Origin: Macrostomum hystrix
Taxonomy: Eukaryota > Animalia > Platyhelminthes
Assembly (NCBI GenBank): GCA_950097015.1
Contig: CATNEN010000001.1
Location: forward strand, 248,001-312,000
Direction of reading: 5' to 3'
Length of the DNA: 64,000 nucleotides
In this document: piece by piece, positions 7,177 to 31,860 of the stretch
How the letters are laid out: each line of letters starts with the position of its first letter
How positions within the stretch are numbered: the first letter of the stretch is position 1
Program-made: the position numbers and the translations under genes
The notes under the pieces: model-generated
The model's database searches: none
The model's input: the letters and a program-made list of their open reading frames with translations, nothing else
Told to the model about the DNA's origin: nothing

Positions 7177-7654
7177 TGTAGAAATGTGGCTGCAAAGTTT
7201 CATATAGGCCATATGTACGCACAATTTGTGTATGACCATATTGGTCAAGGAAAATTACTGTAAAAAAGGACGGACTTAAAGGGGACCGAGGCGTAACACA
7301 GCCCCCTTTCGTTTGTCTATTTTTAGAAGCGAAGGCTTCGTTTAACTGTACACTATTTAAGAGGCTGACAAACGCTCTTCTAGAGGGAAGAAATTACAGC
7401 GCATGGGAGAAAACTTTGACTTTCTACCCATGGGAATAACCGAAACTAAAAGAGAGATGGAATCTTATTTATTGATCGTTTCACTTGTTGTATTCACGGA
7501 GACGACGAAACAGCAAACTGTACAGTTGAAACTTTTTACAGAATTTTCATTTTTTAATCTTTAAACTAGACATTCTATTTTGACAGACGTCTTTAAGAAG
7601 GCATTGTCAGCTGGTTTAAAAATCTGTAATATAGTTTTTAAATTATCTAAGAAT

Positions 7655-13845: not shown

Positions 13846-13857
13846 ATTTCTTTTTCC
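13846..13857 (+). promoter_or_regulatory. TCT / 5'TOP initiator of the snoRNA host transcript
   Basis: tttC+1tttttcc pyrimidine tract 45 nt upstream of a perfect ctg|gtaagt donor; TOP starts are typical of snoRNA host genes. Confidence 0.55.
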
Positions 13858-14689
13858 AAGTGTACTCGTTTTTACGACTCTACGTCTTTCACTGGTAAGT
13901 ATATATTTATATTTATGTGTTTTTTAAAGAATTGCATGCTTTGTATCTACCGTTTGCTTTGTAGCTAACTTTAGCCTTTCCGCGGCCGCTTATGTGAACA
14001 TTGAAAAGTTATGCTTAGATGTAAAGCCGGTCTTTAATCCACACGTAGTTTTTTCAATTTTTATATATTAGTCTAGTTTATTTAGTTATTTAGTTAGGCC
14101 CTACTAATTATTTAGCCACAGCTAAATACAGTCAGTGTTTTTAGACTTAACATTGCTTGTTGTTGCTTCATAATTTATATAATAGTAAAGCTCTCAAGTT
14201 TAAGAAGACTTGCAAGCAATGTAAAAATTAAAATTTTAAATCTTGAAAAAATGACCAGAATCAAGGTGTGTCCAAAATTGCATTTAACAATGAAACCTAA
14301 GTTTGAGGCTAGAAATCAGTGTTTGACAAAGTGACCAAGCTTTTTTGGCTATTTTGTCATCTAGTTTTTAACTAGCCATAGAATACAAGTAACAAAAACA
14401 CCACTAATTTAGACCCCACTAATCCTTGGATCCAGCCTTTTCTCTCGACACAATGTGCTAAGTAAACAGATGATTGAATAGGCCCATTCTTTTTGAATCA
14501 TTCCTTAACTTTTTCTGAAAAGTTTCGTTTTTAATTAATTAAATTAGAAATTAAATTAAATTAGAAATTCCTTTAATTAGAAAAAGGAATTTAGGAATCC
14601 AATCATTAATGTTGCTGGCAATGTTCTACTTCTATTTGTTATTCAGGTAAAGTTGCTCGCTTGGCAAATAATATGAATAAAAAGGCGAG

Positions 14690-15300
14690 AATCAACATTT
14701 AATGTTTAACAACGCGTTTCGCACGTTTCGTGCATCTTCAGGTTTATTAAAACGAATATAGCAAATAGAACAGCGAATAAATATGAGATTTTGGGTGAAC
14801 TTTATTCAATATTTTTTAATCAATAATTTAAAATTTTCCGAGTACATATTTGATATTCCGTAAGTCAAGAGGCAAGTCCAGGGGCGGATTGTTAGCATTA
14901 CAGCCAGCAGTGTAGAAAGTACAGCCAGTGCCCCCTCCCTCAGAACACACGGAGAACATGGCCTGCGCCACTGTGTTGGAGTTGAGTGTTGAGGTTGGGG
15001 GAATGAGCTTTAATGTACAACGCTTCAAGTATCTGCAGTTTGGAGTCAAATGAGCATTGGTCAATGACTTTGAAGCGCTCTTTGGGTTTGCAGCTGGAGC
15101 AGCTATTACATTCTAAGAGATGGTTTTGAATAGTCGACGGTTTCAGCCAGTGCTCCCTGATTCTATTGTGCAGGTGCCTTTTAGTCTTCCCCACGTAGGA
15201 GACGCTCTGGTCATCAGAGCAGTTGAATTGGTAAACTACACCAGCACGAAGAGCACAGGGAACACGTGACTTCAACCAACCGACAAAGTTGCCAACTTTA
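14690..15300 (-). mobile_element. Penelope-like retroelement 3' fragment (GIY-YIG endonuclease + 3' UTR)
   Basis: GVVYQFNCS...YVGKTKRHLHNRIREH...H...LEALYI...PNLNTQ is typical of the PLE GIY-YIG C-terminus. Confidence 0.88.
14706..14746 (-). ncRNA. Minimal type I hammerhead ribozyme of the Penelope element
   Basis: Reverse complement reads aac-CTGAAGA-t-gcacg-aaa-cgtgc-GAAA-cgcg-TT-gtt: core boxes, stem II, palindromic stem III, 3-bp stem I. Confidence 0.8.
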
Positions 15301-15342
15301 GCAAAAAGAAAGATGATGCTCTGATGACCAGAGCATAGGTTT

Positions 15343-15655
15343 TAGACCTATTCATACAAGCTGCCATGTGGATAAGCTGAAAATTATCGGCATGGCTCTG
15401 TATGAATAAAATTGAAATTAATAGCATGGTATTTTATATAAAAAGTTGTAGACCTATTCATACAAGCTGCCGTGTGGATAAGCTGAAAATTATCGGCATG
15501 GCTCTGTATGAATAAAATTGAAATTAATAGCATGGTATTTTATATAAAAAGTTGTAGACCTATTCATACAAGCTGCCGTGTGGATAGCAGAAAATTATCA
15601 GCACAGATCCATGTGGATAAAATTGAAATTATCGGCACGGGACCGTGGGAATAAG
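15343..15655. repeat. 106-bp tandem repeat (~3 units)
   Basis: tagacctattcatacaagc at 15343, 15449 and 15555. Confidence 0.85.
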
Positions 15656-15827
15656 CTCTGCCTATTACCTATAGTGCAAAAGGATTTTTGTGTATGACAG
15701 AAAGTAATTTTCTATTTCGTTTGGTTGTAAGGCGGTACAACAGTGTTTTTGTGTTTTTCTGTGTTCTTTTTGTTCCGTTCTTCCATGTTCTATATTCGTT
15801 TTTTGTTACAGATTTAGAACTAAAAGA

Positions 15828-15904
15828 ATGATGACATAGATCCAATCATGAGCACTGTGTTACTCTGCAACAATGATTGCACATTTTGAGCTTTTTAACC
15901 CTGA
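15828..15904 (+). ncRNA. Box C/D snoRNA, dual guide 18S Am668 (SNORD36/snR47-like) + Gm683 (SNORD19-like), copy 1
   Basis: C box atgatga; D' guide agatccaa pairs with 18S ttggatct; D guide gagctttttaac-c-ctga pairs with 18S gttaaaaagctc. Confidence 0.88.
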
Positions 15905-16079
15905 AATTGTTTACAACTGTATAACCTGTTGCTTCACCTAACAAATTAACTGTAAAAGCTTAACAATTCTCCCCCTTACCTTTTTAGATGCCCCATGAGT
16001 TGTGTGGTCCAATTGTTAAATAAAATGGTAAGATTTGAATATAATATTTGTTTTGTGCACCATAAGCAAAACATGTAAT

Positions 16080-16139
16080 GTGATGAGTTTTTTGGTGAAT
16101 TCTATGAAATCTAATGAAAATTTTTACATTGTATACTGA
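16080..16139 (+). ncRNA. Box C/D snoRNA, D' guide complementary to 28S agaattcaccaa; D guide tttacattgtat of uncertain target
   Basis: gtgatga...ctga with terminal aatg/catt stem; ttggtgaattct-atga; D box 78 nt before acceptor at 16217. Confidence 0.75.
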
Positions 16140-16512
16140 CATTTTTTTGTTGCTCTAAACTTATTGCCATTTATTAAGAACATTGCTCGTTATGAATTTT
16201 TTACTTTTCCATTTTAGATGCCTCATAAATGTAAAAAGCCAAGTCATAAGGTAACTGCTTTTTATTTATATTTATTAAGTTTTGTAGAGTTATGTTACAG
16301 TAACTTACTGTGGTATTTTTCTAGCCATCTTAGAATGCTAATGAAATTTTCTCATAAACTTTATGGGCTTCCAAATATCATTTTCAAGGTTTTACTTGTA
16401 TTCTCCTAAGAAGTATTTCTCTTTTCTTCTAGAACTCAAGTTCAAGTTTTTTATTTACTTTTTACTTTTCTAGAATGTCTTCTACATAATAAGTAGAGCA
16501 AAGTTGATAGAA

Positions 16513-16571
16513 ATGATGAATAAATCCGATTTGATCACGTATGATTTGAAGTCCGGTTGAACAATATCTGA
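16513..16571 (+). ncRNA. Box C/D snoRNA, orphan 'gatcacg-atga' family copy 1
   Basis: atgatga...ctga; conserved gatcacg-t-atga element shared with copies at 19425, 21219 and 26262. Confidence 0.65.
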
Positions 16572-16802
16572 TTTTTAAGCTATTTGTTAAAGTTAGTCTT
16601 TACATTACATTAAAAAATGTAAAATGTTTAAAATTTAAATGTAAATAATGTTTCTTAACCAGACCTTACCTAATTCCAGTTAAGCAGCGAACCTACTGCA
16701 CATGTGATGCCTAGTTCTTTAACGTAAACAAAATCTATTCAGGTGAGAATGCTAGTTTTTTGCTGTAATTTTATACTTTACTAAATGTAAACACTAATCT
16801 TA

Positions 16803-17130
16803 TTATGAATTCTTACCCGCTAAAAAATAGGGATCTCGGTGCTTCTTGCTGGCAAAATGGAATCACCCAATGAATCCTCCAGTTCAGAAGATTCCATGCT
16901 CAGAAACCGCCGAGGAATCGCCCGTAAATAATTCTCTGGTTGTCCCATGGGCCACTGGTTCGGGTGATTCTTCGGCGGTTTCCGCACAATTTACGGTTAC
17001 ATCGGCTGCTTCCTGGGTGGTTTCTCTAACTCTTGCGAGATAGGGGGGTTTTGGTAGATTCCACTCCTATTTTGCACAAAAACCGCCGAAGAAGCAGCCG
17101 AATTTCTTACAGGGTAACCGCACCATCTTT
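16803..17130 (+). pseudogene. SNORD51/76-like snoRNA copy disrupted by MITE insertion
   Basis: Flanks 'aaacactaatcttattatgaattctta | taaccgcaccatctttcgtcgaatgg' rejoin into a decayed copy of the snoRNA at 20940. Confidence 0.7.
16816..17114 (-). mobile_element. Same MITE, internally deleted copy
   Basis: cccgctaaaaaatagg...ttacaggg flanked by TA/TA. Confidence 0.82.
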
Positions 17131-17198
17131 CGTCGAATGGTTTTTCAATCAAAATTAATTTAATAATTTATAATAATAAGCCGGTGCTCAACACTTTC

Positions 17199-17274
17199 AT
17201 GATGCATAATTTACCAAACCATCTTTCGTCTGACAAGTAAAATTTCTTAATGCTGTCGACTATAATCGGTCTGA
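17199..17274 (+). ncRNA. Box C/D snoRNA, 28S Am807(yeast) guide (SNORD51/snR39-like), divergent copy
   Basis: C box atgatgc; accatctttcg-t-ctga pairs with 28S cgaaagatggt; terminal ctga at 17271-17274. Confidence 0.7.
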
Positions 17275-17470
17275 TTTATTGTTACTCTATTATTAAAAGT
17301 TTTATAATTTTTTTATTTTATTCTTAATGACTTTTCACCAACAACATACTTTTGCAGAACCATTTTATTCAAGATTAGCAGTTTTTTGCGTTATACTACT
17401 TACTAGCTGCTTGGTGAGGTGAGACTTATTTGCGTAAAATTATAATCCTGTCAATGTACTTTCCTATATT

Positions 17471-17528
17471 GTGATGACCAATTCTTACCTACATTGTATG
17501 ATCATTGTGACTAAATTTATTTATCTGA
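17471..17528 (+). ncRNA. Box C/D snoRNA SNORD34/snR62-like (28S Um), copy 1
   Basis: gtgatga; cttacctacattg-t-atga pairs with 28S caatgtaggtaag; ctga. Confidence 0.85.
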
Positions 17529-18106
17529 AAAATAATGACTGGGGGTAATTATACGATCCTGTCGTTGACAAAATATTTATGGTAATTGCCCTTTTTCCCA
17601 TTTCAGGCAAATTATTTTCAAAAATTAGTATAACACGAATTAAAATGTGAGTTCACAATTCAAAATATATGCTTCACTTTATGCTTAATAACATCCTTAA
17701 TAGATTCCTCAACAGATCGCGTTTGATTGAATAAAACAATTTTAAATGGGTCCAGCCTGAGTTTTCGTTTTTTCGTTTGCACAATTTCTCTAAATCAAAT
17801 TTTTTTTATTGACTATATGCTTTTTTTGTCTTTTTACAGGTTAATGCTCTATTTGCTGTTTCGTCGGAGAGTAAAGCGAACAACTATTGCATGTAAGTTT
17901 ATGCATCTACAGAATAACTAGTTTTATGTAAGCAAACAATAAATAAACACAATTCTAGTGTGGCATTTAGAAGTTATAGTACATATATATGCTTTACTAT
18001 CTAGCTGCAACTTTTTATATTTTAGAGTCGCTGTTTTAACAAATGAACAGATTTATAAGTTTTAGTGGTGTTCTTGAATATTTTACCAAGTATACAATAT
18101 TTATTA

Positions 18107-18185
18107 ATGATGAATCGATTCTGCCATATGACAGAGAAACGTTTGTCATGATCTAGACTTCTATTACCGTTCCATATTTTTCTGA
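18107..18185 (+). ncRNA. Box C/D snoRNA SNORD47-like (28S Cm3866), copy 1
   Basis: gattctgcca-t-atga D' guide plus the accgttcca element that human U47 also carries. Confidence 0.88.
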
Positions 18186-18470
18186 ATTCTCTAATCGACT
18201 TATATTCGCTTATTTTTAAACCTAATTGCTTTTTGAAAAAATTAATTAATTAGTAATTTAATGTGATTTTTCAGATAATGATGCTCCTTAGGAACTATCT
18301 TCTTCCTCAACGAAGGTAAGAACATAATAGTTTTATTCTTGATCAAATTATTTATTGTTTCTGTTATTATCAATAGTTATAAGATATGTTAAAAGTTAAA
18401 AGTTTTAACTCGATTTAAAAGTTTTCAAAAACATTGTTAGGTTTTAGTACTTTTACATGCACTGATATAA

Positions 18471-18540
18471 ATGATGATCAAAAACTTACCTACATTGTAT
18501 GACCGTAATAACGGCTTGACAACAGTACCAAACTTGCTGA
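18471..18540 (+). ncRNA. Box C/D snoRNA SNORD34-like, copy 2
   Basis: atgatga; cttacctacattg-t-atga; internal ccgt/acgg stem; accaaacttg-ctga. Confidence 0.88.
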
Positions 18541-18718
18541 AACAAAGTTCGGATTTAGGATTAGGAAAAACAAAAATGCCACGAAATTATCAACAAAACG
18601 TCTTTTTTTATTGTTTTAGCATAACAACCAGGTTCTATATTTCCGTCGTTTCCGCAACAAGTACAAAGGTAAGCCATAAGAATTTTAACTTATTTTTGTT
18701 GTGGTACTTCTATGTTTT

Positions 18719-18785
18719 GTGATGACAAACACGACGGTCTTCTGAATTACAGCAAATGAGGATGCCTATGTAATTTATTATCTGA
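18719..18785 (+). ncRNA. Box C/D snoRNA SNORD35/snR73-like (28S Cm4506), copy 1
   Basis: gtgatga; cacgacggtct-t-ctga pairs with 28S agaccgtcgtg; C' tgagga; ctga. Confidence 0.88.
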
Positions 18786-19052
18786 AAATTGTTGTCTTTA
18801 GTTCAATTAGTTCCTTTCAAAGTTTTCAACAATTAAACAACTTTATTTTCTAATTCTTTAATTTTTCAGGAGTGTGTCATCATTCAACCTGATGTTTTCA
18901 ACACCGTATAGAGTGAGTTTCGATTTCTTGGTTAAATAGTTGAAAAAAACTTTGTCAAGTATAATCGGGCTAGAAGTGTAAAAAATAGGGATGGTGTCAG
19001 CGCATTGTCAGTACTCTTAGTAATGTTTACTGATGGTAAGCACTGCTCCCCC

Positions 19053-19127
19053 ATGATGAATACCTAACCACACCATCTTTCGTCTGATGGTTATTTAATT
19101 ACATGATGTCTAAATTGCTACTTCTGA
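19053..19127 (+). ncRNA. Box C/D snoRNA, dual guide 28S Am807(y) (SNORD51-like) + Am1449(y) (SNORD76-like), copy 1
   Basis: caccatctttcg-t-ctga and ttgctact-t-ctga (pairs with 28S agtagcaa). Confidence 0.85.
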
Positions 19128-19424
19128 ATTTAGTGTTTTACACAATGAAAAGTTTATTTTTAATATTATGTTTAATTAAGAACTATGTTTTAAAATAATA
19201 TTCAACTTAACAAACTCAATTTTAGTTTTTTTCCGGATTTGTGACCAATTTAGATAATTTCTGACAATTTTACGGTGAGTTACGTCGCTTCATTAGTTAT
19301 GGAACTAAATAGCTACATGTATAAAACAGTGGTTCCAAACTGCTACTTGTAGAGCCTCCAATAACTAGTTTAAAGTCCTGTCTGTAATACTTTATGCTCA
19401 ATAAAATACTACTTAACTATAAAC

Positions 19425-19483
19425 ATGATGAATTGCTAATCAGATCACGTATGATTGACTAATCCTCCAAGTGCAAAATCTGA
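19425..19483 (+). ncRNA. Box C/D snoRNA, orphan 'agatcacg' family copy 2
   Basis: atgatga; aatcagatcacg-t-atga; ctga. Confidence 0.7.
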
Positions 19484-19608
19484 TTTTAAAACCTGACTTG
19501 CTATAGGTTAATACTTTATTAGCTATTTTAACTGACAAGTAAAGCGAATAACTAAATGCGAGTACATGTAAGTTTATTCTACTATAGATAGTTATAAGTA
19601 ATAGGCAC

Positions 19609-20029
19609 CCCGCTAAAAAATAGGGATGTTTCTTTGGGTGATTCCAGTTGAAATCTGCGGTGTTTCCAGTAAAAGAGACAGCCGAACGCTGGAAACATAC
19701 CAATCGGAATCCGGATGATTCCATGCTTGGAATCTACCCAACTGGGCGTTTTCTCGGTGCTTCTTGGTGGCGAGATGGAATCACCCAAAGAATCCTCCAG
19801 TTCGGAAGATTCCATGCTCAGAAACCGCCGAGGAATCGCCCGTAAATAATTCTCTGGTTGTCCCATGGGCCACTGGTTCGGGTGATTCTTCGGCGGTTTC
19901 CGCACAATTTACGGTTACATCGGCTGCTTCCTGGGTGGTTTCTCTAACTCTTGCGAGATAGGGGGGATTTTGGTAGATTCCACTCCTATTTTGCACAAAA
20001 AACCCGCCGAAGAAGCAGCCGAATTTTTA
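19609..20029 (-). mobile_element. Same MITE, one terminus truncated
   Basis: High identity to 2446-2863; terminal caggg missing. Confidence 0.8.
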
Positions 20030-20107
20030 TGATGAACCGATTCTGCCATATGACAGACAAATGTTTGTCATGATCTAGACTTCTATTACCGTTCCATATT
20101 TTTCTGA
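20029..20107 (+). ncRNA. Box C/D snoRNA SNORD47-like, copy 2
   Basis: Near-identical to 18107-18185. Confidence 0.85.
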
Positions 20108-20395
20108 GTTTTAAATCTTAAATTTACAGTCGTAGTTTTTTTAACAGAAATACTATGGCTAATTTATTTAATAAGTATTTGCATACTTTTTCAGATAATG
20201 ATGTACACTTCTGAGTAACTGTCAGCTTCTTAAACAAAGGTAAAGACATAAATGTATTGTTAATCAAATTATTGATTATTCCAGTTATTATACGTAGTTT
20301 TTAGAAACGAGTTTTATAACTCAATGTTCTGCTTTTCATAAACTTTTTAAGGTTTCTGAAATGTTCTTTTAAGCAACATGCTGTTAGCATAAATT

Positions 20396-20464
20396 ATGAT
20401 GATCAAAACTTACCTACATTGTATGACCGTAATAACGGCTTGACTAAATTACCAAACTTGCTGA
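20396..20464 (+). ncRNA. Box C/D snoRNA SNORD34-like, copy 3
   Basis: Near-identical to 18471-18540. Confidence 0.88.
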
Positions 20465-20649
20465 TGTAAAGTTTTTTTTAGTTATTTTTTTTAATTCACA
20501 TACGTTCAATAACATTTTAACGTCTTTTTTTATTTTTTTATTGTTTTAGGGTAACAACCTGATCTTCTATTTCTGTAGCTTCAGCAACAGGTACAAAGGT
20601 AAGCCGTATGCAATTTTAATGAATCGTTACTCATTATAATATACGACAT

Positions 20650-20719
20650 ATGATGACAAACACGACGGTCTTCTGAATTATAGTAATTAATGAGGATGCC
20701 TATGTACTATACTATCTGA
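20650..20719 (+). ncRNA. Box C/D snoRNA SNORD35-like, copy 2
   Basis: atgatgacaaacacgacggtcttctga...ctga. Confidence 0.88.
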
Positions 20720-20939
20720 AAACTGTTTTTATCAATTAGTTCCTTCTAAAGACAGGTTTACCAAATAACGCAACTATATAACTCTTCCGTTTTTTTCCAG
20801 GAGTATGTGAATTCAACGTGATGGTTTCAACACGTAGAAGGTAAGTTTGTTTACACATTTTGAGATTGATGATTTCGGGAAAAACTTATAAAGTGTGTAT
20901 TAATAATTAATTTGCATCGGTATATGAAACACTGGTCCT

Positions 20940-21014
20940 ATGATGAATACTTAACCACACCATCTTTCGTCTGATGGTTATTTAATTACATGATGTCTAA
21001 ATTGCTACTTCTGA
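20940..21014 (+). ncRNA. Box C/D snoRNA SNORD51/76-like dual guide, copy 2
   Basis: Near-identical to 19053-19127. Confidence 0.85.
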
Positions 21015-21218
21015 ATTTAGTGTTTTACATTGCAAAATGATTTATAATTGAAAAGTTAAGTTTAATTTGATAAAAGTGTGAATATTATGCAACTTTGTTA
21101 ACTCTATTTTAGATTTTTTCGCTTTGTGACCAATTTGGATGTATATTTTACTGTAAGTAACGTAAACTAATTTTCTTTAGTTTTTTTAATAATGAATTAG
21201 CTGTTTGTATAAAATAAA

Positions 21219-21284
21219 ATGATGTCGAATTATAATCAGATCACGAATGATAGATGTGACAGAATTCACCACGGGGGGAACTGA
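21219..21284 (+). ncRNA. Box C/D snoRNA, orphan 'agatcacg' family copy 3
   Basis: atgatgt C box; aatcagatcacg-a-atga; ctga. Confidence 0.6.
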
Positions 21285-21531
21285 AACAGTCAAACATACT
21301 GTTACATTACATACAGTATACTACAAGTCGTACTTTTGTTTAGACTATTTTTAAATGATATTAAACCATGTATAATTATACTCTATTTTTAGATATTATT
21401 TAGAATCCTTTTCACTGGCATCTATTTCAAACGAGTCGACGACACTAGATATGGTAAGAGATATAATTGTTTCTATTAATTAAGTATACTCTGTTCAATT
21501 GACATGATTAAAAATTTGGAATATTTTTTTA

Positions 21532-21596
21532 ATGATGACAAACACGACGGTCTTCCGAATAAGAAATACTGAGGATGCTTTTATATAATTTTCTGA
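21532..21596 (+). ncRNA. Box C/D snoRNA SNORD35-like, copy 3
   Basis: atgatgacaaacacgacggtcttccga (D' ccga); ctga. Confidence 0.83.
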
Positions 21597-21789
21597 AAAT
21601 AAATTTTCATTTAATGTGCTTCACTTGTGAATTATCGTAGCTTATTATTCTCCTAACTGTTAAATATGTCAATTGTATTTCAGAGTTTCTTAACAGCTTC
21701 TTTTATTGGTTCAAAACATCAAGCCAGGTAAGTTGATATATTTAATGTAATTTGGCTAATAACGTAATTTTCTGAACTTTGACTCTAAA

Positions 21790-22097
21790 TTTAACGGGCC
21801 AGATGGAGAATCTAAAAGACAACAGCAGCACGCATTGACGGTAGAAGTTTAAGATACATGAGAAACTAAAGTAGAGGAGATCAGACAGAAGAGATGACGT
21901 GGAGATAAGACACGGTAGAGACAAGACATGGGATAGATAAGGCACAGAAGAGACAAGACATGTGGGAGATAAAACACGATAGAGACGAGACACAGGTAAA
22001 ATGAACCAGGATCCTGTAGCTGTCGGTAGGGGCAGGAGCAACGGGCCGGATTTAAGAGCTTCGAAAGCCGCATCTGGCCCGCGGGCCGGAGTTTGGT
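21790..22097 (-). mobile_element. Diverged copy of the hAT-type MITE
   Basis: gccgcatctggcccgcgggccggagtttg is the reverse complement of the start of the 40303 element; GA-rich interior. Confidence 0.7.
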
Positions 22098-22269
22098 GAT
22101 TTCATAACATTGATAGGTTTTTTAGCACTTTTTATTTCTTCTCAAAGTATAAGATGAATAGACAATTAGTTTCTAACAGTTCCGTGTTGAAGGGAACTAG
22201 CAACGTACCGTCAATGACATTTACCAATTCATGAAGATATCTTGATTTATATTTTAAATATTAGTTTTA

Positions 22270-22335
22270 ATGATGACAAACACGACGGTCTTCTGAATTT
22301 AAAGCACTGAGGATGCTCTTATAAAATTAATCTGA
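22270..22335 (+). ncRNA. Box C/D snoRNA SNORD35-like, copy 4
   Basis: atgatgacaaacacgacggtcttctga; ctga. Confidence 0.87.
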
Positions 22336-22761
22336 ATATATGTTTATTTCATCTTTTTGATTGTCGTAGTTTGTAATTTTCACCTAACTAAATGCTAAAC
22401 ATTTCTCTGTTTATTTCCAGGATTTCTTTAAAAGCTTCCAAAAGTTTAATGCAGGAACTACGGGTGAGTTACACAATTTAAATCTGCTAAACTTTTAAGC
22501 TAATTATACTTGTCTACAATCAATTTACTTTAATTTTAAACTAATCGCATTATCTTTAATTATGGTATGCTTTCTAACGCAATTCTAATTCAAGTTTCAT
22601 AATCTAACCTAAATTGCAGTTGCACACCTGATGCCCAGTTTCTTAACCTCTCAGCGAAATCGATTCAGGTAAGAATGCTTGGTTTTTAGGTAGCAATTTC
22701 ATTTTTTTATTCCAATTACGACAGCCATTTTGGTACTACAAGTACTGTAAACACTGGTCCT

Positions 22762-22836
22762 ATGATGAATACTTAACCACACCATCTTTCGTCTGATGGT
22801 TTTTTAATTATATGATTTTTAAATTGCTACTTCTGA
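22762..22836 (+). ncRNA. Box C/D snoRNA SNORD51/76-like dual guide, copy 3
   Basis: Both guides intact. Confidence 0.85.
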
Positions 22837-23032
22837 TTTCATACTATTATATACATTATTAGATAAATAAGCTTAATTTCAGGTAACAATTTCTATGCCT
22901 TACATGTCGCTTAACTTTTCAGAATAATGAATTATCGAGATCGAGTCAAGACCACATGCTGTCTGTATATATTTGGACAGGTGAGTAGTTAACCATATTT
23001 GCTTCTAATTCACTGTGGCTTATAAATTCATT

Positions 23033-23110
23033 ATGATGAATACAGATCCAATTATGAGTTAGAAAATGGCCATGATTTTTCGTTATCAAATTCGAGCTTT
23101 TTAACCCTGA
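23033..23110 (+). ncRNA. Box C/D snoRNA SNORD36/19-like dual guide, copy 2
   Basis: cagatccaat-t-atga and cgagctttttaacc-ctga. Confidence 0.88.
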
Positions 23111-23339
23111 AAATGCAAATACTTAGCTTCTTATTCATATTTTTCATGCTTCACGATATTAACAAGCCTTTTTTAATTTACAATTTTTTAGATTTTGTTG
23201 ACTTCTCGAAACTCTGCATTATCAGTCTAATGTAAGTTTAGAGCTATCGTCTGCAGTGGCATTTTTTATGCTTACTATTTTATTCTGTTTCAATAGGCAC
23301 AATACAAGTTGCAGTCACTTTTTGAAACACCTGCCTCCG

Positions 23340-26145
23340 AGCTCCCCAGGTTAGATACACCACTACAAATCCTCAGGTTAGATACACCGCTACAAATCCT
23401 CAGGTTAGAGACACCACACTACAATATCCTCTGGTTAGAGACACCACTCTACAATATCCTCTGGTTAGAGACACCACTCTACAATATCCTCTGGTTAGAG
23501 ACACCACTCTACAATATCCTCTGGTTAGAGACACCACTCTACAATATCCTCAGGTTAGAGACACCACTCTACAATATCCTCAGGTTAGACACCACTCTAC
23601 AATATCCTCTGGTTAGACACCACTCTACAATATCCTCTGGTTAGAGACACCACTCTACAATATCCTCAGGTTAGAGACACCACTCCACAATATCTTCAGG
23701 TTAAAGACACCACTCTACAATATCCTCAGGTTAGAGACACCACTCTACAATATCCTCAGGTTAGACACCACTCTACAATATCCTCAGGTTAGAGACACCA
23801 CTCTACAATATCCTCAGGTTAGAGACACCACTCTACAATATCCTCAGGTTAGACACCACTCTACAATATCCTCAGGTTAGAGACACCACTCTACAATATC
23901 CTCTGGTTAGAGACACCACTCTACAATATCCTCAGGTTAGAGACACCACTCCACAATATCTTCAGGTTAAAGACACCACTCTACAATATCCTCAGGTTAG
24001 AGACACCACTCTACAATATCCTCAGGTTAGAGACACCACTCTACAATATCCTCAGGTTAGAGACACCACTCTACAATATCCTCTGGTTAGAGACACCACT
24101 CTACAATATCTTCAGGTTAGAGACACCACTCTACAATATCCTCAGGTTAGAGACACCACTCTACAATATCCTCAGGTTAGAGACACCACTCTACAATATC
24201 CTCAGGTTAGAGACACCACTCTACAATATCCTCATGTTAGAGACACCACTCTACAATATCCTCAGGTTAGAGACACCACTCTACAATATCCTCAGGTTAG
24301 AGACACCACTCTACAATATCCTCAGGTTAGAGACACCACTCTACAATATCCTCTGGTTAGAGACACCACTCTACAATATCCTCTGGTTAGAGACACCACT
24401 CTACAATATCCTCTGGTTAGAGACACCACTCTACAATATCCTCAGGTTAGAGACACCACTCTACAATATCCTCAGGTTAGAGACACCACACTACAATATC
24501 CTCTGGTTAGAGACACCACTCTACAATATCCTCTGGTTAGAGACACCACTCTACAATATCCTCTGGTTAGAGACACCACTCTACAATATCCTCAGGTTAG
24601 AGACACCACTCTACAATATCCTCAGGTTAGACACCACTCTACAATATCCTCAGGTTAGACACCACTCTACAATATCCTCAGGTTAGAGACACCACTCTAC
24701 AATATCCTCAGGTTAGAGACACCACTCTACAATATCCTCAGGTTAGACACCACTCTACAATATCCTCTGGTTAGAGACACCACTCTACAATATCCTCTGG
24801 TTAGAGACACCACTCTACAATATCCTCTGGTTAGAGACACCACTCTACAATATCCTCAGGTTAGACACCACTCTACAATATCCTCATGTTAGAGACACCA
24901 CTCTACAATATCCTCAGGTTAGACACCACTCTACAATATCCTCAGGTTAGAGACACCACTCTACAATATCCTCTGGTTAGAGACACCACTCTACAATATC
25001 CTCAGGTTAGACACCACTCTACAATATCCTCATGTTAGAGACACCACTCTACAATATCCTCTGGTTAGAGACACCACTCTACAATATCCTCAGGTTAGAG
25101 ACACCACACTACAATATCCTCTGGTTAGAGACACCACTCTACAATATCCTCTGGTTAGAGACACCACTCTACAATATCCTCTGGTTAGAGACACCACTCT
25201 ACAATATCCTCAGGTTAGAGACACCACTCTACAATATCCTCAGGTTAGACACCACTCTACAATATCCTCAGGTTAGACACCACTCTACAATATCCTCAGG
25301 TTAGAGACACCACTCTACAATATCCTCAGGTTAGAGACACCACTCTACAATATCCTCAGGTTAGACACCACTCTACAATATCCTCTGGTTAGAGACACCA
25401 CTCTACAATATCCTCTGGTTAGAGACACCACTCTACAATATCCTCTGGTTAGAGACACCACTCTACAATATCCTCAGGTTAGACACCACTCTACAATATC
25501 CTCATGTTAGAGACACCACTCTACAATATCCTCAGGTTAGACACCACTCTACAATATCCTCAGGTTAGAGACACCACTCTACAATATCCTCTGGTTAGAG
25601 ACACCACTCTACAATATCCTCAGGTTAGACACCACTCTACAATATCCTCATGTTAGAGACACCACTCTACAATATCCTCTGGTTAGAGACACCACTCTAC
25701 AATATCCTCAGGTTAGAGACACCACTCTACAATATCCTCTGGTTAGAGACACCACTCTACAATATCCTCTGTTTAGAGACACCACTCTACAATATCCTCA
25801 GGTTAGACACCACTCTACAATATCCTCAGGTTAGAGACACCACTCTACAATATCCTCTGGTTAGAGACACCACTCTACAATATCCTCAGGTTAGAGACAC
25901 CACTCTACAATATCCTCAGGTTAGACACCACTCTACAATATCCTCAGGTTAGAGACACCACTCTACAATATCCTCAGGTTAGAGACACCACTCTACAATA
26001 TCCTCATGTTAGAGACACCACTCTACAATATCCTCATGTTAGAGACACCACTCTACAATATCCTCATGTTAGAGACACCACTCTACAATATCCTCATGTT
26101 AGAGACACCACTCTACAATATCCTCAGGTTAGAGACACCACTATA
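23340..26145. repeat. 30-bp satellite (agacaccactctacaatatcctcaggttag)
   Basis: Direct tandem repeats with 28-bp variants. Confidence 0.95.
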
Positions 26146-26261
26146 CCCACTTTGAGTGGGCACCCACTTAGCTAGATTCATCGTTAACTACGCCACAGCA
26201 AGGTCTTAAAATTAAGCTCGTATTGGCCTCTTGGTTGTCCTTATTATCAAAGTAATGTTAA

Positions 26262-26329
26262 ATGATGACTTTATATAATAAAGATCACGCATGATTACGT
26301 CGTAGCAGATCTTGTCCAATATTGTCTGA
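26262..26329 (+). ncRNA. Box C/D snoRNA, orphan 'agatcacg' family copy 4
   Basis: atgatga; aaagatcacg-c-atga; ctga. Confidence 0.6.
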
Positions 26330-26366
26330 TTATTGTATCGTGTATTTTTAGCTAATTTAAAGTGAC

Positions 26367-26431
26367 GTGATGAGTCAATTCTAGTTTATATGATCGGTTT
26401 ATGATCAATTTGTTCTAGAGGCTGTTACTGA
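26367..26431 (+). ncRNA. Box C/D snoRNA SNORD95-like (28S Am2802), copy 1
   Basis: gtgatga; ctagaggctgtt-a-ctga pairs with 28S aacagcctctag. Confidence 0.82.
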
Positions 26432-26586
26432 ATTGTCTAAACTATATACTTTTTTACCTACTATTTTAAGCTAATATATATTATAATTTAAATGTGTTTC
26501 ACTTTTCAGAAGCCAAAATCTTGGATTTCTGGCGAGGTAATTATTCAAGAATATACTTCTGTTATGCGTAAAGTAGAAACTAATTT

Positions 26587-26660
26587 TTGATGACCAAAGA
26601 TCCAATTATGAGTTTGAAATAGCTATGAGTTTTCTTATTCTAAAACGAGATTTTTATCTT
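26587..26660 (+). pseudogene. Decayed SNORD36/19-like copy
   Basis: D' guide agatccaattatga retained; D guide mutated (cgagattttta) and D box deleted. Confidence 0.65.
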
Positions 26661-26869
26661 TTGTGCTCTACGATATTAAAATGCATTTTTACTCTATTTT
26701 TAGATTTCTAGGCTTGTCGCAACTCTGTCTTGTCAGGCTCACACTCATTTTATTAAGAGGCAAGTTAAACAGTTTCATCTGCAGCGCGTTTTTATGCAAA
26801 ATTGTTTTGTCTTGATATATGCATATGTGTATAAGTGTATTTTCCGTTTTCAATCAATCAGGGGAAAAT

Positions 26870-27770
26870 GATCCCCTGATCACCACCACTCTCCCTGATC
26901 CTCAGTTTATAAACACCACTCTCCCAGATCCTAAGTTTATAAACACCACTCTCCCAGATCCTCAGTTTATAAACACCACCCTCCCTGATCCTCAGTTTAT
27001 AAACACCACTCTCCCAGATCCTCAGTTTATAAACACCACTCTCCCTGATCCTCAGTTTATGAACACCACTCTCCCTGATCCTCAGTTTATGAACACCACT
27101 CTCCCTGATCCTCAGTTTATGAACACCACCCTCCCAGATCCTAAGTTTATAAACACCACTCTCCCAGATCCTCAGTTTATAAACACCACTCTCCCTGATC
27201 CTCAGTTTATGAACACCACTCTCCCTGATCCTCAGTTTATGAACACCACTCTCCCAGATCCTCAGGTTATGAACACCACTCTCCCAGATCCTCAGTTTAT
27301 AAACACCACTCTCCCAGATCCTCAGGTTATGAACACCACTCTCCCAGATCCTCAGTTTATAAACACCACTCTCCCTGATCCTCAGTTTATAAACACCACT
27401 CTCCCTGATCCTCAGTTTATGAACACCACTCTCCCAGATCCCTAAGCTTCTCTCCCAGATTCCTTAGCTAGGGACACCACTCTCCCAGATCCCTAAGCTA
27501 CTCTCCCAGATTCCTTAGCTAGGGACACCACTCTCCCAGATCCCTAAGCTAGGGACACCACTCTCCCAGATCCCTAAGCTTCTCTCCCAGATTCCTTAGC
27601 TAGGGACACCACTCTCCCAGATCCCTAAGCTACTCTCCCAGATTCCTTAGCTAGGGACACCACTCTCCCAGATCCCTAAGCTACTCTCCCAGATTCCTTA
27701 GCTAGGGACACCACTCTCCCAGATCCCTAAGCTAGGGACACCACTCTCCCAGATCCCTAAGCTAGCGACA
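26870..27770. repeat. 30-bp satellite (aacaccactctcccagatcctcagtttat) and derivatives
   Basis: Direct tandem repeats. Confidence 0.95.
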
Positions 27771-27943
27771 TCATATAGCTAAGCTAAGGAAATGTTCATA
27801 TTTTGCTTTCTTTCGTTTTTAGATTGAAAAGTCAATCTTTGCGACTACATTCCACACCTGCGACGTATTTCTCTCAACATTCAGTGAGTATCTGCGTTGA
27901 TTCTTAACTATTTTCTAGTTAAGTTTAGTCATAAGGAAATAAC

Positions 27944-28008
27944 ATGATGAGTCAATACTAGATTATATGATTGAATTATGATCATTATTTTCTAGAGGCT
28001 GTTTCTGA
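27944..28008 (+). ncRNA. Box C/D snoRNA SNORD95-like, copy 2
   Basis: atgatga...tctagaggctgttt-ctga. Confidence 0.85.
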
Positions 28009-28181
28009 AGAATTTAGAATCTCATGTTCTATAACTGTTTATGAATAAAAAACTAAGGCTTATGTTACTGTACCCTCCCCTAAATTCTTCCAGTCTACCT
28101 GCTGCCTGTATTGATTAGCGAGGTAATCATTTATTTATATTTGCTTTTATTTAATCATTATCTCTTATTATTTGAAATTTT

Positions 28182-28258
28182 ATGATGAGTTCAGATCCAA
28201 TTATGAGTTAGTAATAGCTTTGAATTTACATATTCAAATACGAGCTTTTTAACCCTGA
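28182..28258 (+). ncRNA. Box C/D snoRNA SNORD36/19-like dual guide, copy 3
   Basis: cagatccaattatga; tacgagctttttaacc-ctga. Confidence 0.88.
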
Positions 28259-28514
28259 CAAAATCAAATAACTAGATTCTTTTTTTATCTTTTGTGCTCT
28301 ACCATATTATAATGCATGTTTACAATTTTTTAGATGGGTCGACTTTTCGCTACTCCTGATTCTCAGAGTCACTCTCATTTCGTTTAAACGTAAGTTTGAA
28401 TTTTTGCAGCGTGTTTTTATGCCACATTGAAAAGTCTGTATTTGCATGTGTATTTTTTCATTTTAGTATAGCACGACTAAAATTGTACTTTCATTTTATT
28501 GACACAACTTTCTG

Positions 28515-30095
28515 ACTTCCTCAGATATAAACCGCTCTCCCAGATCCTCAGGTTGGGAACACCGCTCTGCCTGATCCTCAGGTTGGGAACACCACTCTCC
28601 CAGATCCTCAGGTTGGGAACACCGCTCTGCCTGATCCTCAGGTTGGGAACACCACTCTCCCAGATCCTCAGGTTAGGAACACCGCTCTCCCTGATCCTCA
28701 GCTATAAACCACTCTCCCTGATCCTCAGCTATAAACCACTCTCCCTGATCCTCAGCTATAAACCACTCTCCCTGATCCTCAGCTATAAACCACTCTCCCT
28801 GATCCTCAGCTATAAACCACTCTCCCTGATCCTCAGCTATAAACCACTCTCCCTGATCCTCAGTTTGGGAACACCACTCTCCCAGATCCTCAGGTTATGA
28901 ACACCACTCTCCCTGATCCTCAGCTATAAACCACTCTCCCTGATCCTCAGTTTGGGAACACCGCTCTCCCTGATCCTCAGCTATAAACCACTCTCCCTGA
29001 TCCTCAGCTATAAACCACTCTCCCTGATCCTCAGCTATAAACCACTCTCCCTGATCCTCAGCTATAAACCACTCTCCCTGATCCTCAGCTATAAACCACT
29101 CTCCCTGATCCTCAGCTATAAACCACTCTCCCTGATCCTCAGCTATAAACCACTCTCCCTGATCCTCAGTTTATGAACACCGCTCTCCCTGATCCTCAGC
29201 TATAAACCACTCTCCCTGATCCTCAGTTTGGGAACACCGCTCTCCCTGATCCTCAGCTATAAACCACTCTCCCTGATCCTCAGCTATAAACCGCTCTCCC
29301 TGATCCTCAGCTATAAACCACTCTCCCTGATCCTCAGCTATAAACCACTCTCCCTGATCCTCAGCTATAAACCGCTCTCCCTGATCCTCAGCTATAAACC
29401 ACTCTCCCTGATCCTCAGCTATAAACCACTCTCCCTGATCCTCAGCTATAAACCACTCTCCCTGATCCTCAGCTATAAACCACTCTCCCTGATCCTCAGC
29501 TATAAACCACTCTCCCTGATCCTCAGCTATAAACCACTCTCCCTGATCCTCAGCTATAAACCACTCTCCCTGATCCTCAGGTTGGGAACACCGCTCTCCC
29601 TGATCCTCAGTTTGGGAACACCACTCTCCCTGATCCTCAGTTTGGGAACACCACTCTCCCAGATCCTCAGGTTATGAACACCACTCTCCCTGATCCTCAG
29701 CTATAAACCACTCTCCCTGATCCTCAGCTATAAACCACTCTCCCTGATCCTCAGCTATAAACCACTCTCCCTGATCCTCAGGTTGGGAACACCGCTCTCC
29801 CTGATCCTCAGTTTGGGAACACCACTCTCCCAGATCCTCAGGTTATGAACACCACTCTCCCAGATCCTCAGGTTATGAACACCACTCTCCCTGATCCTCA
29901 GCTATAAACCACTCTCCCTGATCCTCAGGTTGGGAACACCGCTCTCCACGATCCTCAGGTTATGAACACCACGGTCCCAGATCCTCAGGTTGGGAACACC
30001 ACTTCTCCCTGATCCTCATGTTATGAGGATACTCTCCCAGATCCTCAGGTTTTGAACACCACTCTCCCGGAACTTTAGTTAAGGAACGCCACTGC
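28515..30095. repeat. 27/30-bp satellite (aaaccactctccctgatcctcagctat)
   Basis: Direct tandem repeats. Confidence 0.95.
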
Positions 30096-30213
30096 CTTAA
30101 CTCATATTGACTTTTATCTGACTTCCAGACCCGCTAACTATTTTTTCATCATTCGATGAGTGTCTGCAACAATTTAAATTATTTTCTAGTTTTTTTAGTC
30201 ATCAGGAAATAAC

Positions 30214-30278
30214 ATGATGAGTCAATACTAGATTATATGATTGAATTATGAACATTATTTTCTAGAGGCTGTTTCTGA
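30214..30278 (+). ncRNA. Box C/D snoRNA SNORD95-like, copy 3
   Basis: Near-identical to 27944-28008. Confidence 0.85.
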
Positions 30279-30482
30279 AGAATTTAGAATCATGATTTTA
30301 TTAAAGATATTATAAACATGATGGTTTATATAAATTTTCTCTCGCCTAACTTTTCCGTTTTTTCTAGGCTACCTGCTGCCTGTATTGTTTGTTAAGGTAA
30401 ATATTCATTTATTTGCTAGTATTTCTAGTATTGCTAGTAATTTGCTAGTATTTACACATTGTCAATTATTACTACAAATCCT

Positions 30483-30560
30483 ATGATGACTACAGATCCA
30501 ATTATGAGTTTTAAAAAAGCTTTGAATTTTCTTCATCAAATACGAGCTTTTTAACCCTGA
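30483..30560 (+). ncRNA. Box C/D snoRNA SNORD36/19-like dual guide, copy 4
   Basis: cagatccaattatga; tacgagctttttaacc-ctga. Confidence 0.88.
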
Positions 30561-30740
30561 AATAAGTACCCGAATTATATGTTTTCTTTTCAATATGCTT
30601 GTTACGCCACTTTATTGTGTAATATACCATGGTAATTATTTTCAGATTTATTCTTCTCGTATAGCTGGAATCGTATAGCTGGAAAGCTTTATCTACTTAA
30701 TCTAAAAGTGAGTTGACTTCTACTTGTCATGTTATTCTTA

Positions 30741-31163
30741 CCTGCTAAAAAATAGGATGTTTCTTTGGGTGATTCCAGTTAGAATCTGTGGTGTTTCCAG
30801 AAAAATTAACAGCCGAACGCTGGAAACAGACCAATCGGATGATTCCATGCTTGGAATCTACCCAACGGGGCTGTTTCTCGGTGCTTCTTGGTGGCGAAAT
30901 GGAATCACCCAAAGAATCCTCCAGTTCGGAAGATTCCATGCTCAGAAACCGCCGAGAAATCGCCCGTAAAGAATTCTCTGGTTGTCCCATGGGCCACTGG
31001 TTCGGGTGGGTGATTCTTAAGCGGTTTCCGCACAATTTACGATCACATCGGCTGCATCCTGGGTGGTTTCTTTAACTCTTGCGAGATAGGGGGGATTTCG
31101 GTAGATTCCACTCCTATTTTGCTCAAAAAACCCGCCGAAGAAGCAGCCGAATTTTTCACAGAG
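30741..31163 (-). mobile_element. Same MITE, older diverged copy
   Basis: cctgctaaaaatagg...cacagag flanked by TA/TA. Confidence 0.8.
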
Positions 31164-31186
31164 TATTTAAATTGTGATTGTGAATA

Positions 31187-31262
31187 ATGATGAGTTACTT
31201 AGTAACTTGTATGATCTTATGACAATTTTATGATCAATAGTATGTCTATGGACACTTACTGA
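31187..31262 (+). ncRNA. Box C/D snoRNA candidate, orphan or diverged SNORD95-like
   Basis: atgatga...atga...atgatca...ctga; D box 83 nt upstream of acceptor at 31345. Confidence 0.55.
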
Positions 31263-31639
31263 TAACAAATATACCTGTATGATTTTCAATTAGCCATTTT
31301 ATCATAGATACACACATCTAAATTTTCATATGTTTGCTATTTTAGAACTCTGTGTTGATTTTAGAAGTTTCTGGTGAGTATTAAAACTTTTTTACTGTAT
31401 ATTGTCATTGATAATACTAAAAAGTGATTTTATGATAAATATTTAGTGCTGAAATTAACAAATATACGCATATGTTCAACACATTCCTCTAATTCTGGTA
31501 ATGCGTGTTAGATTTTTTGTTCGTTTTTTTCTGATTTTAAATTGTATATAATTTATCTGCATCATATTACTAGCAGTAGAGTAAAAGTTTATAGACAACT
31601 TAATAGCACAGCCTTTAAGTACGTAAAATAAAAGTCTAC

Positions 31640-31794
31640 CTTTTCACCCCAGCCCAGCTAATGATTGTACCGATTTTAGCTACGACTGGATAAACTTAAG
31701 CGTGTCTTGCTCAATGACAGTCTCCCTCCCTCCAAGATTCGAACTCCTGACCTCCCAGTTAAAAACTTGAAGCTTTACTAACCTGCGCTAACCA
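31640..31794 (-). mobile_element. tRNA-derived SINE fragment
   Basis: Reverse complement tggttagcgcaggttag...ggaggtcaggagttcgaatc has A- and B-box-like motifs. Confidence 0.55.
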
Positions 31795-31860
31795 AACATA
31801 ACACAATTTCAGCTGTACAACAAAGCCAGCCAATCAGATTAAAGACAGGCAATCTTTAGA

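Follow-up and report, generated by a model that had tools for sequence, protein, structure and literature searches.

A probable multi-intron host gene for tandemly duplicated box C/D small nucleolar RNAs in the flatworm Macrostomum hystrix

A 64,000-nucleotide stretch of the genome of the flatworm Macrostomum hystrix (GenBank assembly GCA_950097015.1, contig CATNEN010000001.1, positions 248,001 to 312,000; the whole stretch is hereafter the window) appears to contain a long non-coding gene whose introns carry box C/D small nucleolar RNAs (snoRNAs), predicted guides for the methylation of ribosomal RNA (rRNA). Rivals aside, positions 13850..31373 of the forward (+) strand are read as a snoRNA host transcription unit with predicted micro-exons at a probability of about 0.85. 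At the level of sequence the locus is real and well supported. The gene type is already known from flies and vertebrates, and the locus described here is very large, among the largest of its kind.

From the arrangement of its parts we infer transcription, splicing, stable small RNAs and methylation. One RNA polymerase II unit would run along the + strand from about 13850 to at least 31373 and contain about 31 tiny non-coding exons, with box C/D snoRNAs in 26 of the 30 introns, about 75-98 nucleotides (nt) upstream of the 3′ splice site. The debranched introns would be trimmed by exonucleases to the small nucleolar ribonucleoprotein core (fibrillarin, Nop56, Nop58 and Snu13), a step that would release guide RNAs of 58-79 nt, and these guides would direct 2′-O-methylation at nine rRNA sites; the spliced exon product would probably be a disposable by-product. 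What the locus adds to the annotation of a flatworm genome is a non-coding host of 31 exons, which gene finders will miss, together with its 28 snoRNA units and the nine methylation sites predicted for them.

Box C/D units and their families

Strict units were defined as a C box of the form RTGATGA followed 45-95 nt on by CTGA, and both strands of the whole 64-kb window were searched. The + strand holds 24 such units, all within 15828-31262, and there are none on the minus (−) strand or in the remainder of the window. Simulated sequence with the window's dinucleotide make-up gave a mean of 0.4 units and a maximum of 3. Two extra units have one-base variants of the C box (17199-17274, ATGATGC; 21219-21284, ATGATGT). 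Two more are decayed relics, one at 26587-26660, which carries mutations in the D guide and no longer has a D box, and one at about 17112-17160, in which the 5′ part has been replaced by a repeat element. The total of 28, with unit lengths of 58-79 nt, bears out a sequence-only reading of this region that had counted about 28 intronic units in the same size range. The number of specificities is smaller than that count might imply, since the units amount to nine families and nine predicted sites; two units are dead relics, and five have no convincing target.

Sorted by sequence, the nine families are A (four units and one relic), B (one unit), C (four units, without identified target), D (three units), E (two), F (four), G (three units, one variant and one relic), H (three) and I (one unit, without identified target). 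They are arranged along the locus in the order A B C G* D / E D F G C / E D F G C / F F G A / C H (A relic) / H A / H A I, where G* is the variant member of family G.

Exon-intron model of the host

The exon-intron model was read from the sequence and then snapped to AG/ and /GT boundaries. It has 31 exons of 23-63 nt, 1388 nt in all, and 30 introns, 29 of them GT-AG and one GC-AG. A single unit occupies each of 25 introns, one intron holds two (C4 and H1) and four are empty; the earlier description, mostly one unit per short intron, is supported apart from these five. Across the 26 occupied introns the distance from the D box to the 3′ splice site has a median of 84.5 nt and falls within 75-98 nt in 20, whereas the distance from the 5′ splice site to the unit can be as short as 50 nt or as long as 3135 nt. 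The sequence-only reading had quoted eight distances from D box to acceptor, and every one of them (83, 78, 89, 79, 84, 81, 85 and 83 nt) proved exact. Most donors agree with the consensus at 6-8 of its 8 positions, and the acceptors have pyrimidine tracts.

All exons lie on the + strand. Exon 1 (13850..13894; donor CTG/GTAAGT) has a guessed start at the CTTTTTCC pyrimidine run at 13850-13857; the 5′ terminal oligopyrimidine start named in the sequence-only reading would amount to no more than this run. Exon 2 (15988..16027) follows an acceptor tract with 18 pyrimidines in 20 positions and has the donor ATG/GTAAGA; it is succeeded by exons 3 (16218..16250), 4 (16680..16742), 5 (17358..17418) and 6 (17607..17646) and, beyond the empty intron 6, by exon 7 (17840..17892). 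Exon 8 (18275..18315) is 72% identical to its paralogue, exon 13 (20195..20239); between them stand exons 9 (18620..18668), 10 (18870..18912), 11 (19226..19274) and 12 (19545..19567), the last being paralogous to the 3′ portion of exon 7. The middle of the gene continues through exons 14 (20550..20598), 15 (20801..20840), 16 (21113..21152), 17 (21393..21453), 18 (21684..21727) and 19 (22421..22463) and, past the empty intron 19, exons 20 (22620..22668), 21 (22923..22980) and 22 (23192..23231). Exon 23 (26510..26536) is separated from these by the long intron 22, exon 24 (26704..26759) has the GC donor, and exons 25 (27823..27883), 26 (28094..28122), 27 (28334..28389), 28 (30129..30159), 29 (30368..30396) and 30 (30646..30707) lead to exon 31 (31346..31373), the last micro-exon, whose donor reads CTG/GTGAGT.

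Coding capacity was judged exon by exon. Exons 4, 11 and 13 contain stops in every frame, and another 14 have a single open frame. The region had been called free of open reading frames (ORFs), and it indeed holds none of at least 110 amino acids besides minisatellite translations and one transposon fragment with a GIY-YIG domain. The description of a non-coding host holds for the exons, which have no long reading frame; it is less certain at the 3′ end, where the consensus donor of the last micro-exon faces an acceptor 49 nt before the ATG of the neighbouring gene SF3A2. H/ACA snoRNAs were considered for the empty introns 6 and 19 and rejected: the folds of these introns are less stable than those of shuffled sequence (z +3.1 and +1.9), and they gave no Rfam H/ACA matches.

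The units might instead be made without splicing, either as independent genes or from a polycistronic precursor cut by endonucleases, in which case the exons would be chance splice-like motifs. Splicing-independent polycistronic snoRNA clusters exist in plants, yeast and trypanosomatids (PMC2780460), and this precedent speaks for such an origin, as does the derivation of the host model from genomic sequence. Yet an unbroken series of thirty donor/acceptor pairs flanks the units, their spacing from the 3′ splice site stays close to 84 nt while the 5′ distance varies between 50 and 3135 nt, and every insertion of a repeat element or minisatellite lies upstream of its snoRNA. Donors and acceptors are also kept between diverged duplicates, the donor motif GGTRAG[TA] occurs 25 times on the + strand against 7 on the − strand, and no recurring promoter-like element is found upstream of the units. 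Production without splicing is accordingly very improbable, and intronic snoRNAs in a spliced host are the preferred reading.

Predicted targets in the organism's own rRNA

Targets were sought in the organism's own ribosomal DNA (rDNA), comprising 18S (1813 nt), 5.8S with internal transcribed spacer (ITS) and 28S (3757 nt). The search took duplexes starting 1-3 nt from a D or D′ box, placed the modified base by the D+5 rule and compared each guide with 200 shuffled versions of itself. An antisense element of 10-15 uninterrupted Watson-Crick (WC) pairs lies 1-2 nt from D or D′ in 23 of the 28 units, the two relics included, and the predicted methylation sites are nine: 18S A627 and G642, and 28S A1035, A1711, A2178, U2198, C2706, U3238 and C3293. 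The sequence-only reading had named guide pairing with the species' own rRNA as a check on the locus, and all families but C and I show such pairing, with the target base opposite the fifth nucleotide upstream of D or D′. For most guides the observed pairing was equalled by 0-1% of the shuffled versions; the shorter D′ duplexes of family A are the exception, being equalled in 1.5-16% of trials. Antisense 10-mers to rRNA number about 260 on the window's + strand, by chance or within repeats, so only their placement beside D or D′ within a C/D unit is informative. All of the units described below are on the + strand.

Family A carries two predicted guides, a D guide to 18S A627 (12-15 WC pairs) and a D′ guide to 18S G642 (8-10 WC pairs plus GU). 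A1, which is SNORD36-like (15828..15904), pairs with A627 over 12 WC pairs and weakly with G642 through its D′ guide; it lies 83 nt from the 3′ splice site and scores 25.4 bits against the Rfam SNORD36 model, for which the gathering score is 30. A2 (23033..23110) pairs with A627 over 13 WC pairs and with G642 over 10 WC pairs and one GU, A3 (28182..28258; Rfam SNORD36, 24 bits) over 15 and 10 WC pairs, respectively, and A4 (30483..30560) with A627 over 15 WC pairs and also with G642. The decayed copy at 26587..26660 was assigned to this family by alignment.

Family G is likewise double, with a D′ guide to 28S A1035 (11-12 WC pairs) and a D guide to 28S A1711 (10 WC pairs). G1 (19053..19127), assigned to the Me28S-Am982/SNORD51 clan with 27.3 bits in Rfam, pairs over 12 and 10 WC pairs at the two sites; G2 (20940..21014), 99% identical to G1, and G3 (22762..22836; 32.4 bits) have the same two targets. 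The variant G* (17199..17274; C box ATGATGC) has a D′ guide to A1035 with 11 WC pairs and stands 83 nt from the 3′ splice site, and its function is putative. In the relic at about 17112..17160 the D′ box is mutated to TCGA, and a 12-nt antisense match to 28S, CACCATCTTTCG, persists.

Family H has a D guide to 28S A2178 with 12 WC pairs. H1 (26367..26431), whose guide is of SNORD95/Z119 type, lies 78 nt from the 3′ splice site; H2 (27944..28008) gives a partial Rfam match to SNORD95 and one to snoZ119, with identity in the guide; and H3 (30214..30278) is 98.5% identical to H2. A weak element of 10 WC pairs in H2 and H3 may be a tenth guide, directed at 28S C2550. Family D is predicted to guide 28S U2198 from its D′ element (14 WC pairs): the SNORD34-like D1 (17471..17528) adds two GU pairs, lies 78 nt from the 3′ splice site and reaches 32.9 bits against the SNORD34 gathering score of 38, D2 (18471..18540) has 14 WC pairs and 29.6 bits against the same model, and D3 (20396..20464) has 14 WC pairs.

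The D′ guide of family E is directed at 28S C2706 with 10 WC pairs. E1, which is SNORD47-like (18107..18185), scores 34.8 bits against a SNORD47 gathering score of 50 with both conserved elements aligned, and E2 (20029..20107) is 96% identical to E1 and scores 30.8 bits. On the D side of the E units stands a conserved element, CGTTCCATATTTTT (18166-18181 and 20088-20103), that is sense-identical to the last 14 nt of the organism's own U6 small nuclear RNA (snRNA). No rRNA complement was found for it, and the Rfam SNORD47 consensus has most of it too.

In family F the D′ guide pairs with 28S C3293 over 11 WC pairs; its members are the SNORD35/Z161-like F1 (18719..18785), F2 (20650..20719), F3 (21532..21596), in which the D′ box reads CCGA, and F4 (22270..22335). 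The single unit of family B (16080..16139), 78 nt from the 3′ splice site, has a D′ guide to 28S U3238 with 12 WC pairs and one GU, which none of the 200 shuffled versions equalled. U3238 lies 55 nt before the SNORD35-type site C3293 and has no counterpart in a published table of human sites (PMC11550049).

Correspondence with vertebrate guides

Permissive Rfam searches produced sub-threshold alignments to SNORD47, SNORD34, SNORD36, SNORD35/Z161, Me28S-Am982 (SNORD51 clan) and SNORD95/Z119, which rest mainly on the guide elements. The predicted sites were also compared with the human table (PMC11550049) by position offset. In human 18S, Am668 (SNORD36) and Gm683 (SNORD19) are 15 nt apart (PMC11550049), a spacing equal to that between A627 and G642 in the organism's own 18S. 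For 28S, A1035 would correspond to human Am1524 (SNORD51/32; offset 489), A1711 to Am2363 (SNORD76; 652), A2178 to Am2815 (SNORD95; 637), U2198 to Um2837 (SNORD34; 639), C2706 to Cm3887 (SNORD47; 1181) and C3293 to Cm4536 (SNORD35; 1243), a series that was described as growing steadily along the molecule. This pattern makes the eight named equivalents proposed by the sequence-only reading plausible. Equivalence to SNORD36, 19, 51, 76, 95, 34, 47 and 35 is probable from guide sequence and offsets together, though not proven.

Several observations weigh against a functional snoRNA host of the kind described. The covariance-model check that had been proposed gave no Rfam match at its gathering score over the whole window. 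The flanks of the units offer 0-5 complementary bases per unit, that is, short terminal stems; intronic animal snoRNAs often have short terminal stems. Exons 12 and 28 are low-confidence because of their weak splice signals: the acceptor of exon 12 is weak, and the donor of exon 28 agrees with the consensus at only 4 of 8 positions. Exon 31 closes with a strong donor, something a terminal exon would not be expected to have. The C units stand at atypical distances from the 3′ splice site (61, 108, 108 and 180 nt). Finally, the five units of families C and I have no convincing target in 18S, 5.8S, ITS, 28S, U1, U2, U4, U5, U6 or the spliced-leader (SL) RNA. These are the orphans C1 (16513..16571; 108 nt to the 3′ splice site), C2 (19425..19483), C3 (21219..21284; C box ATGATGT) and C4 (26262..26329; in intron 22 together with H1), and unit I (31187..31262), which has good boxes and lies 83 nt from the 3′ splice site.

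The four C units share an invariant GATCACG directly before the D′ box (16533-16539, 19443-19449, 21239-21245 and 26283-26289), which complements CGUGAUC in stem-loop I of the organism's own U1 snRNA. U1 stem-loop I was tried as a target of C1 and set aside: the duplex of 9 WC pairs and one GU (10 bp) is not significant, C2-C4 keep 7 pairs, and the match is taken as chance. The five targetless units and the U3238 site are candidates for lineage-specific functions.

Duplication, selection and genomic distribution

The extra copies come from internal tandem duplication of multi-intron blocks, as read from the order and similarity of their parts: E-D-F-G-C is present twice, and H-A three times together with minisatellite introns. 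The locus shows a mode of host growth by duplication of blocks of several introns. When the two E-D-F-G blocks are aligned (17994-19290 and 19930-21170), the snoRNAs are 87-99% identical, the exons 68-77% and the intron flanks 26-64%, and the splice sites are kept. In the H-A cassette pair the snoRNAs are 86-98.5% identical and the remainder 37-79%. Between paralogous blocks within the locus, then, exons are 37-79% identical against 86-99% for snoRNAs. Within families, invariance is confined to the boxes and the targeting guide: the four F copies agree throughout the C box plus D′ guide (23 columns) and in the C′ region, while their unused D-guide region drifts, and the four intact A copies have both guides unchanged, whereas the relic carries mutations in them.

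These comparisons bear on the suggestion that the array is largely dead, with at most one functional copy per family and the rest decaying segmental duplicates. Decay is evident in the two clear relics (26587-26660 and about 17112-17160), in the variant C boxes at 17199 and 21219 and in the F copy with a CCGA D′ box; family C and unit I are without targets, and a repeat element stops 4 nt short of the E2 C box. The intact copies, however, keep their boxes and targeting guides while the intron around them is 26-64% identical in the first block pair and 43-78% in the second. Boxes and guides kept amid diverged introns point to purifying selection on most copies, and a largely dead array is unlikely.

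Paralogues were sought by a BLAST search of the whole 220-Mb genome with two query stretches that covered seven families, A and C-H. Copies of families A and C-H were found inside this locus only, so for these families it would be the sole source of the guides, and of the nine predicted sites, eight appear to have no guide from elsewhere. Loss or silencing of the host would offer a clean test of the role of those methyl groups in a regenerating animal.

Repeats and insertions in the locus

Minisatellites take up about 5 kb of the span and a 420-bp repeat element about 1.1 kb; this element is non-coding, and its copies are 92-97% identical. A partial copy in intron 4 (16834..17104, +) is 97% identical to 19752-20025, part of the full copy in intron 12 (19600..20025, +) that ends 4 nt before the C box of E2; a third copy, in intron 30 (30741..31153, +), has 92% identity, and a further copy in the window lies at 2456-2864 (−). 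The three intronic copies are all on the + strand and end 4-34 nt upstream of a C/D unit (the G relic, E2 and I), a placement that could reflect an insertion preference or selection on the 3′ side of the intron.

Three introns carry large minisatellites: a 30-bp unit in about 95 copies in intron 22 (23343..26146), units of 30 bp and 51/81 bp in the empty intron 24 (26884..27764), and a 27-bp unit in about 50 copies in the empty intron 27 (28518..29928). They are related, having a common ACACCACTCT core and occupying successive introns of the H-A cassettes, and the satellite was evidently duplicated along with the H-A cassette and then expanded independently. Minisatellites are also numerous elsewhere in the window, at 4.2-6.1 kb and 49-63 kb among other places. 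Intron 1 holds an ORF with a GIY-YIG nuclease domain (14943-15275, −; Pfam E = 1.6e-7) that is probably left over from a Penelope-like element; next to it is a 106-bp tandem repeat in 2.8 copies (15339-15631).

All of the large insertions, namely the three 420-bp copies, the three minisatellites and the GIY-YIG fragment, lie either upstream of their snoRNA or in an empty intron. Selection on the spacing between snoRNA and branch point would be expected to produce this asymmetry. It suggests that the snoRNA and its spacing from the 3′ splice site are kept by selection, while the intron upstream of the snoRNA is free to take up transposons and minisatellites.

Relation to known snoRNA hosts

The predicted gene can be set beside the Drosophila Uhg genes (Uhg1, Uhg2, Uhg4, Uhg5 and others), which are also multi-exon non-coding hosts with one C/D snoRNA per short intron, guide isoforms arising by internal duplication and a controlled distance to the 3′ splice site. 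Uhg1 has 16 snoRNAs and only five exclusive rRNA sites (PMC4430873), and the flatworm locus likewise has many copies for few sites. It differs in being larger, with 28 units and 30 introns; three of its introns are swollen by minisatellites of 0.9-2.8 kb, and the host stands head-to-tail with SF3A2 in an organism with SL trans-splicing. This junction is the one feature that could prove new, and together with the orphan family C and the U3238 site it is a part of the locus worth follow-up.

Vertebrate GAS5, SNHG1 (UHG) and other SNHG genes are similar in having non-coding exons and C/D guides that sit in introns, about 70-90 nt before the 3′ splice site. A 5′ terminal oligopyrimidine (5′TOP) start is documented for these vertebrate hosts. 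GAS5 carries SNORD47 and SNORD76, and the target sites listed for these two in the human table (PMC11550049) are among those predicted to be guided here. In contrast to the tandem paralogue blocks of the flatworm locus, the vertebrate hosts carry mostly different guides. The flatworm units also differ from vertebrate guides in that one RNA joins a SNORD36-type and a SNORD19-type guide and another a SNORD51-type and a SNORD76-type guide.

Tandem amplification has a parallel in mammals. The SNORD116/SNORD115 and SNORD113/114 arrays consist of repeated cassettes of a micro-exon and an intron, with one C/D snoRNA each, in a long non-coding host. The flatworm locus resembles these arrays in having cassettes amplified in tandem; theirs, however, are orphan, tissue-specific and imprinted snoRNAs, whereas most copies here are predicted to be canonical rRNA guides.

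The 3′ end and the SF3A2 neighbour

The first coding exon of SF3A2 (31861..32307, +) has Pfam matches to zf-met and SF3A2 and 88% identity to SF3A2 proteins. What separates it from exon 31 is either a spacer or a snoRNA-less 'intron 31' (31374..31812, +), which ends at 31812 in a tttcag/ acceptor 49 nt before the SF3A2 ATG. Poly(A)-type signals follow exon 31, an ATTAAA at 31380 and an AATAAA near 31626. That the host ends here as a separate polyadenylated non-coding RNA has a slightly less than even chance. The broader idea that large snoRNA hosts are built into housekeeping transcription units, whether as the first, non-trans-spliced member of an operon or as a disposable cis-spliced leader of SF3A2, seems improbable at present. 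If it were true, one promoter would drive both the rRNA-methylation guides and the spliceosome factor SF3A2, and SL trans-splicing would rescue a coding gene lying behind a long, non-coding, intron-rich precursor.

As a leader of SF3A2, exon 31 would be cis-spliced to the acceptor at 31812, and the snoRNAs would then sit in 5′ untranslated region introns of a protein-coding host. The donor of exon 31 is a consensus one (CTG/GTGAGT), the next pyrimidine-rich acceptor on the same strand is the one just upstream of the SF3A2 ATG, and the two genes are on the same strand with a gap of only 439 nt. On the other hand, a leader of about 1.4 kb with about 26 upstream ATGs (counted exon by exon) should block SF3A2 translation, and the ATTAAA 7 nt past the donor or the AATAAA about 250 nt on could end the transcript. 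A smaller snoRNA host at the ARF1 locus, moreover, carries AATAAA in its last exon and has no such donor, and the genome's spliced leader could serve SF3A2 independently. Cis-splicing of the host into SF3A2 is therefore quite unlikely.

An operon-like unit would have one promoter near 13.85 kb, with the host polyadenylated after exon 31 and SF3A2 trans-spliced to the spliced leader at 31812. The means for this are present in the genome, where a genome-wide pattern search finds 19 exact copies of the 3′ 21 nt of the published Macrostomum lignano leader (PMC8629364), followed by a GTAAG donor. That study places 15% of M. lignano genes in operons, and in 18% of the operons the first gene is not trans-spliced (PMC8629364). 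The gap of about 440-490 nt falls inside the 1-kb operon threshold of that study (PMC8629364), and no obvious promoter element was seen between the host and SF3A2. Against an operon, SF3A2 may have its own promoter, and the consensus donor of exon 31 would compete through cis-splicing; after trans-splicing at 31812, furthermore, the AUG in the leader would open a 10-codon upstream ORF before the SF3A2 ATG. An operon is possible but doubtful, and a separately polyadenylated host remains the preferred account of the 3′ end.

The ARF1 locus (G000:C1, about 23.695 Mb; − strand, L007, about 7227-7305) has a small snoRNA host upstream of ARF1. Its units include one of C/D type whose 12-nt D′ guide is directed at 18S G1584, and two in which the C box is degenerate. 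The AATAAA in the host's last exon is followed by a 1.2-kb minisatellite and then by the ARF1 acceptor, which precedes the ATG. The neighbourhood is the same as that of the SF3A2 locus and hints at a recurrence of the arrangement; it does not decide between the readings of the 3′ end.

Between exon 31 and SF3A2, at about 31690-31790 on the − strand, the sequence has by eye a tRNA-derived look, with a GGTTCGAATC-like T arm, and may be a short interspersed nuclear element; ARAGORN called no tRNA here or elsewhere in the window. A 29-bp minisatellite of more than 21 copies (32371-33000 and beyond) opens intron 1 of SF3A2 (32308 to about 35165).

Two further observations concern the spliced leader. 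The spacer of each rDNA repeat (period 11,645 bp) contains a single SL RNA gene, which matches the Macrostomum leader 3′ end plus GTAAG exactly, and a single U1 snRNA gene (151.7 bits); the two share the strand of 18S and 28S (G000:C15:9725-9750 and 10067-10229; also on C17 and C42). A tandem array at G000:C39:12.667-12.753 Mb, with a period of about 927 bp, contains more than 60 copies of an SL-like variant, GAAGACTCTCTTTTTTGCATGGTAAG, that differs from the canonical leader by 3 mismatches, and this array may represent a second spliced-leader family.

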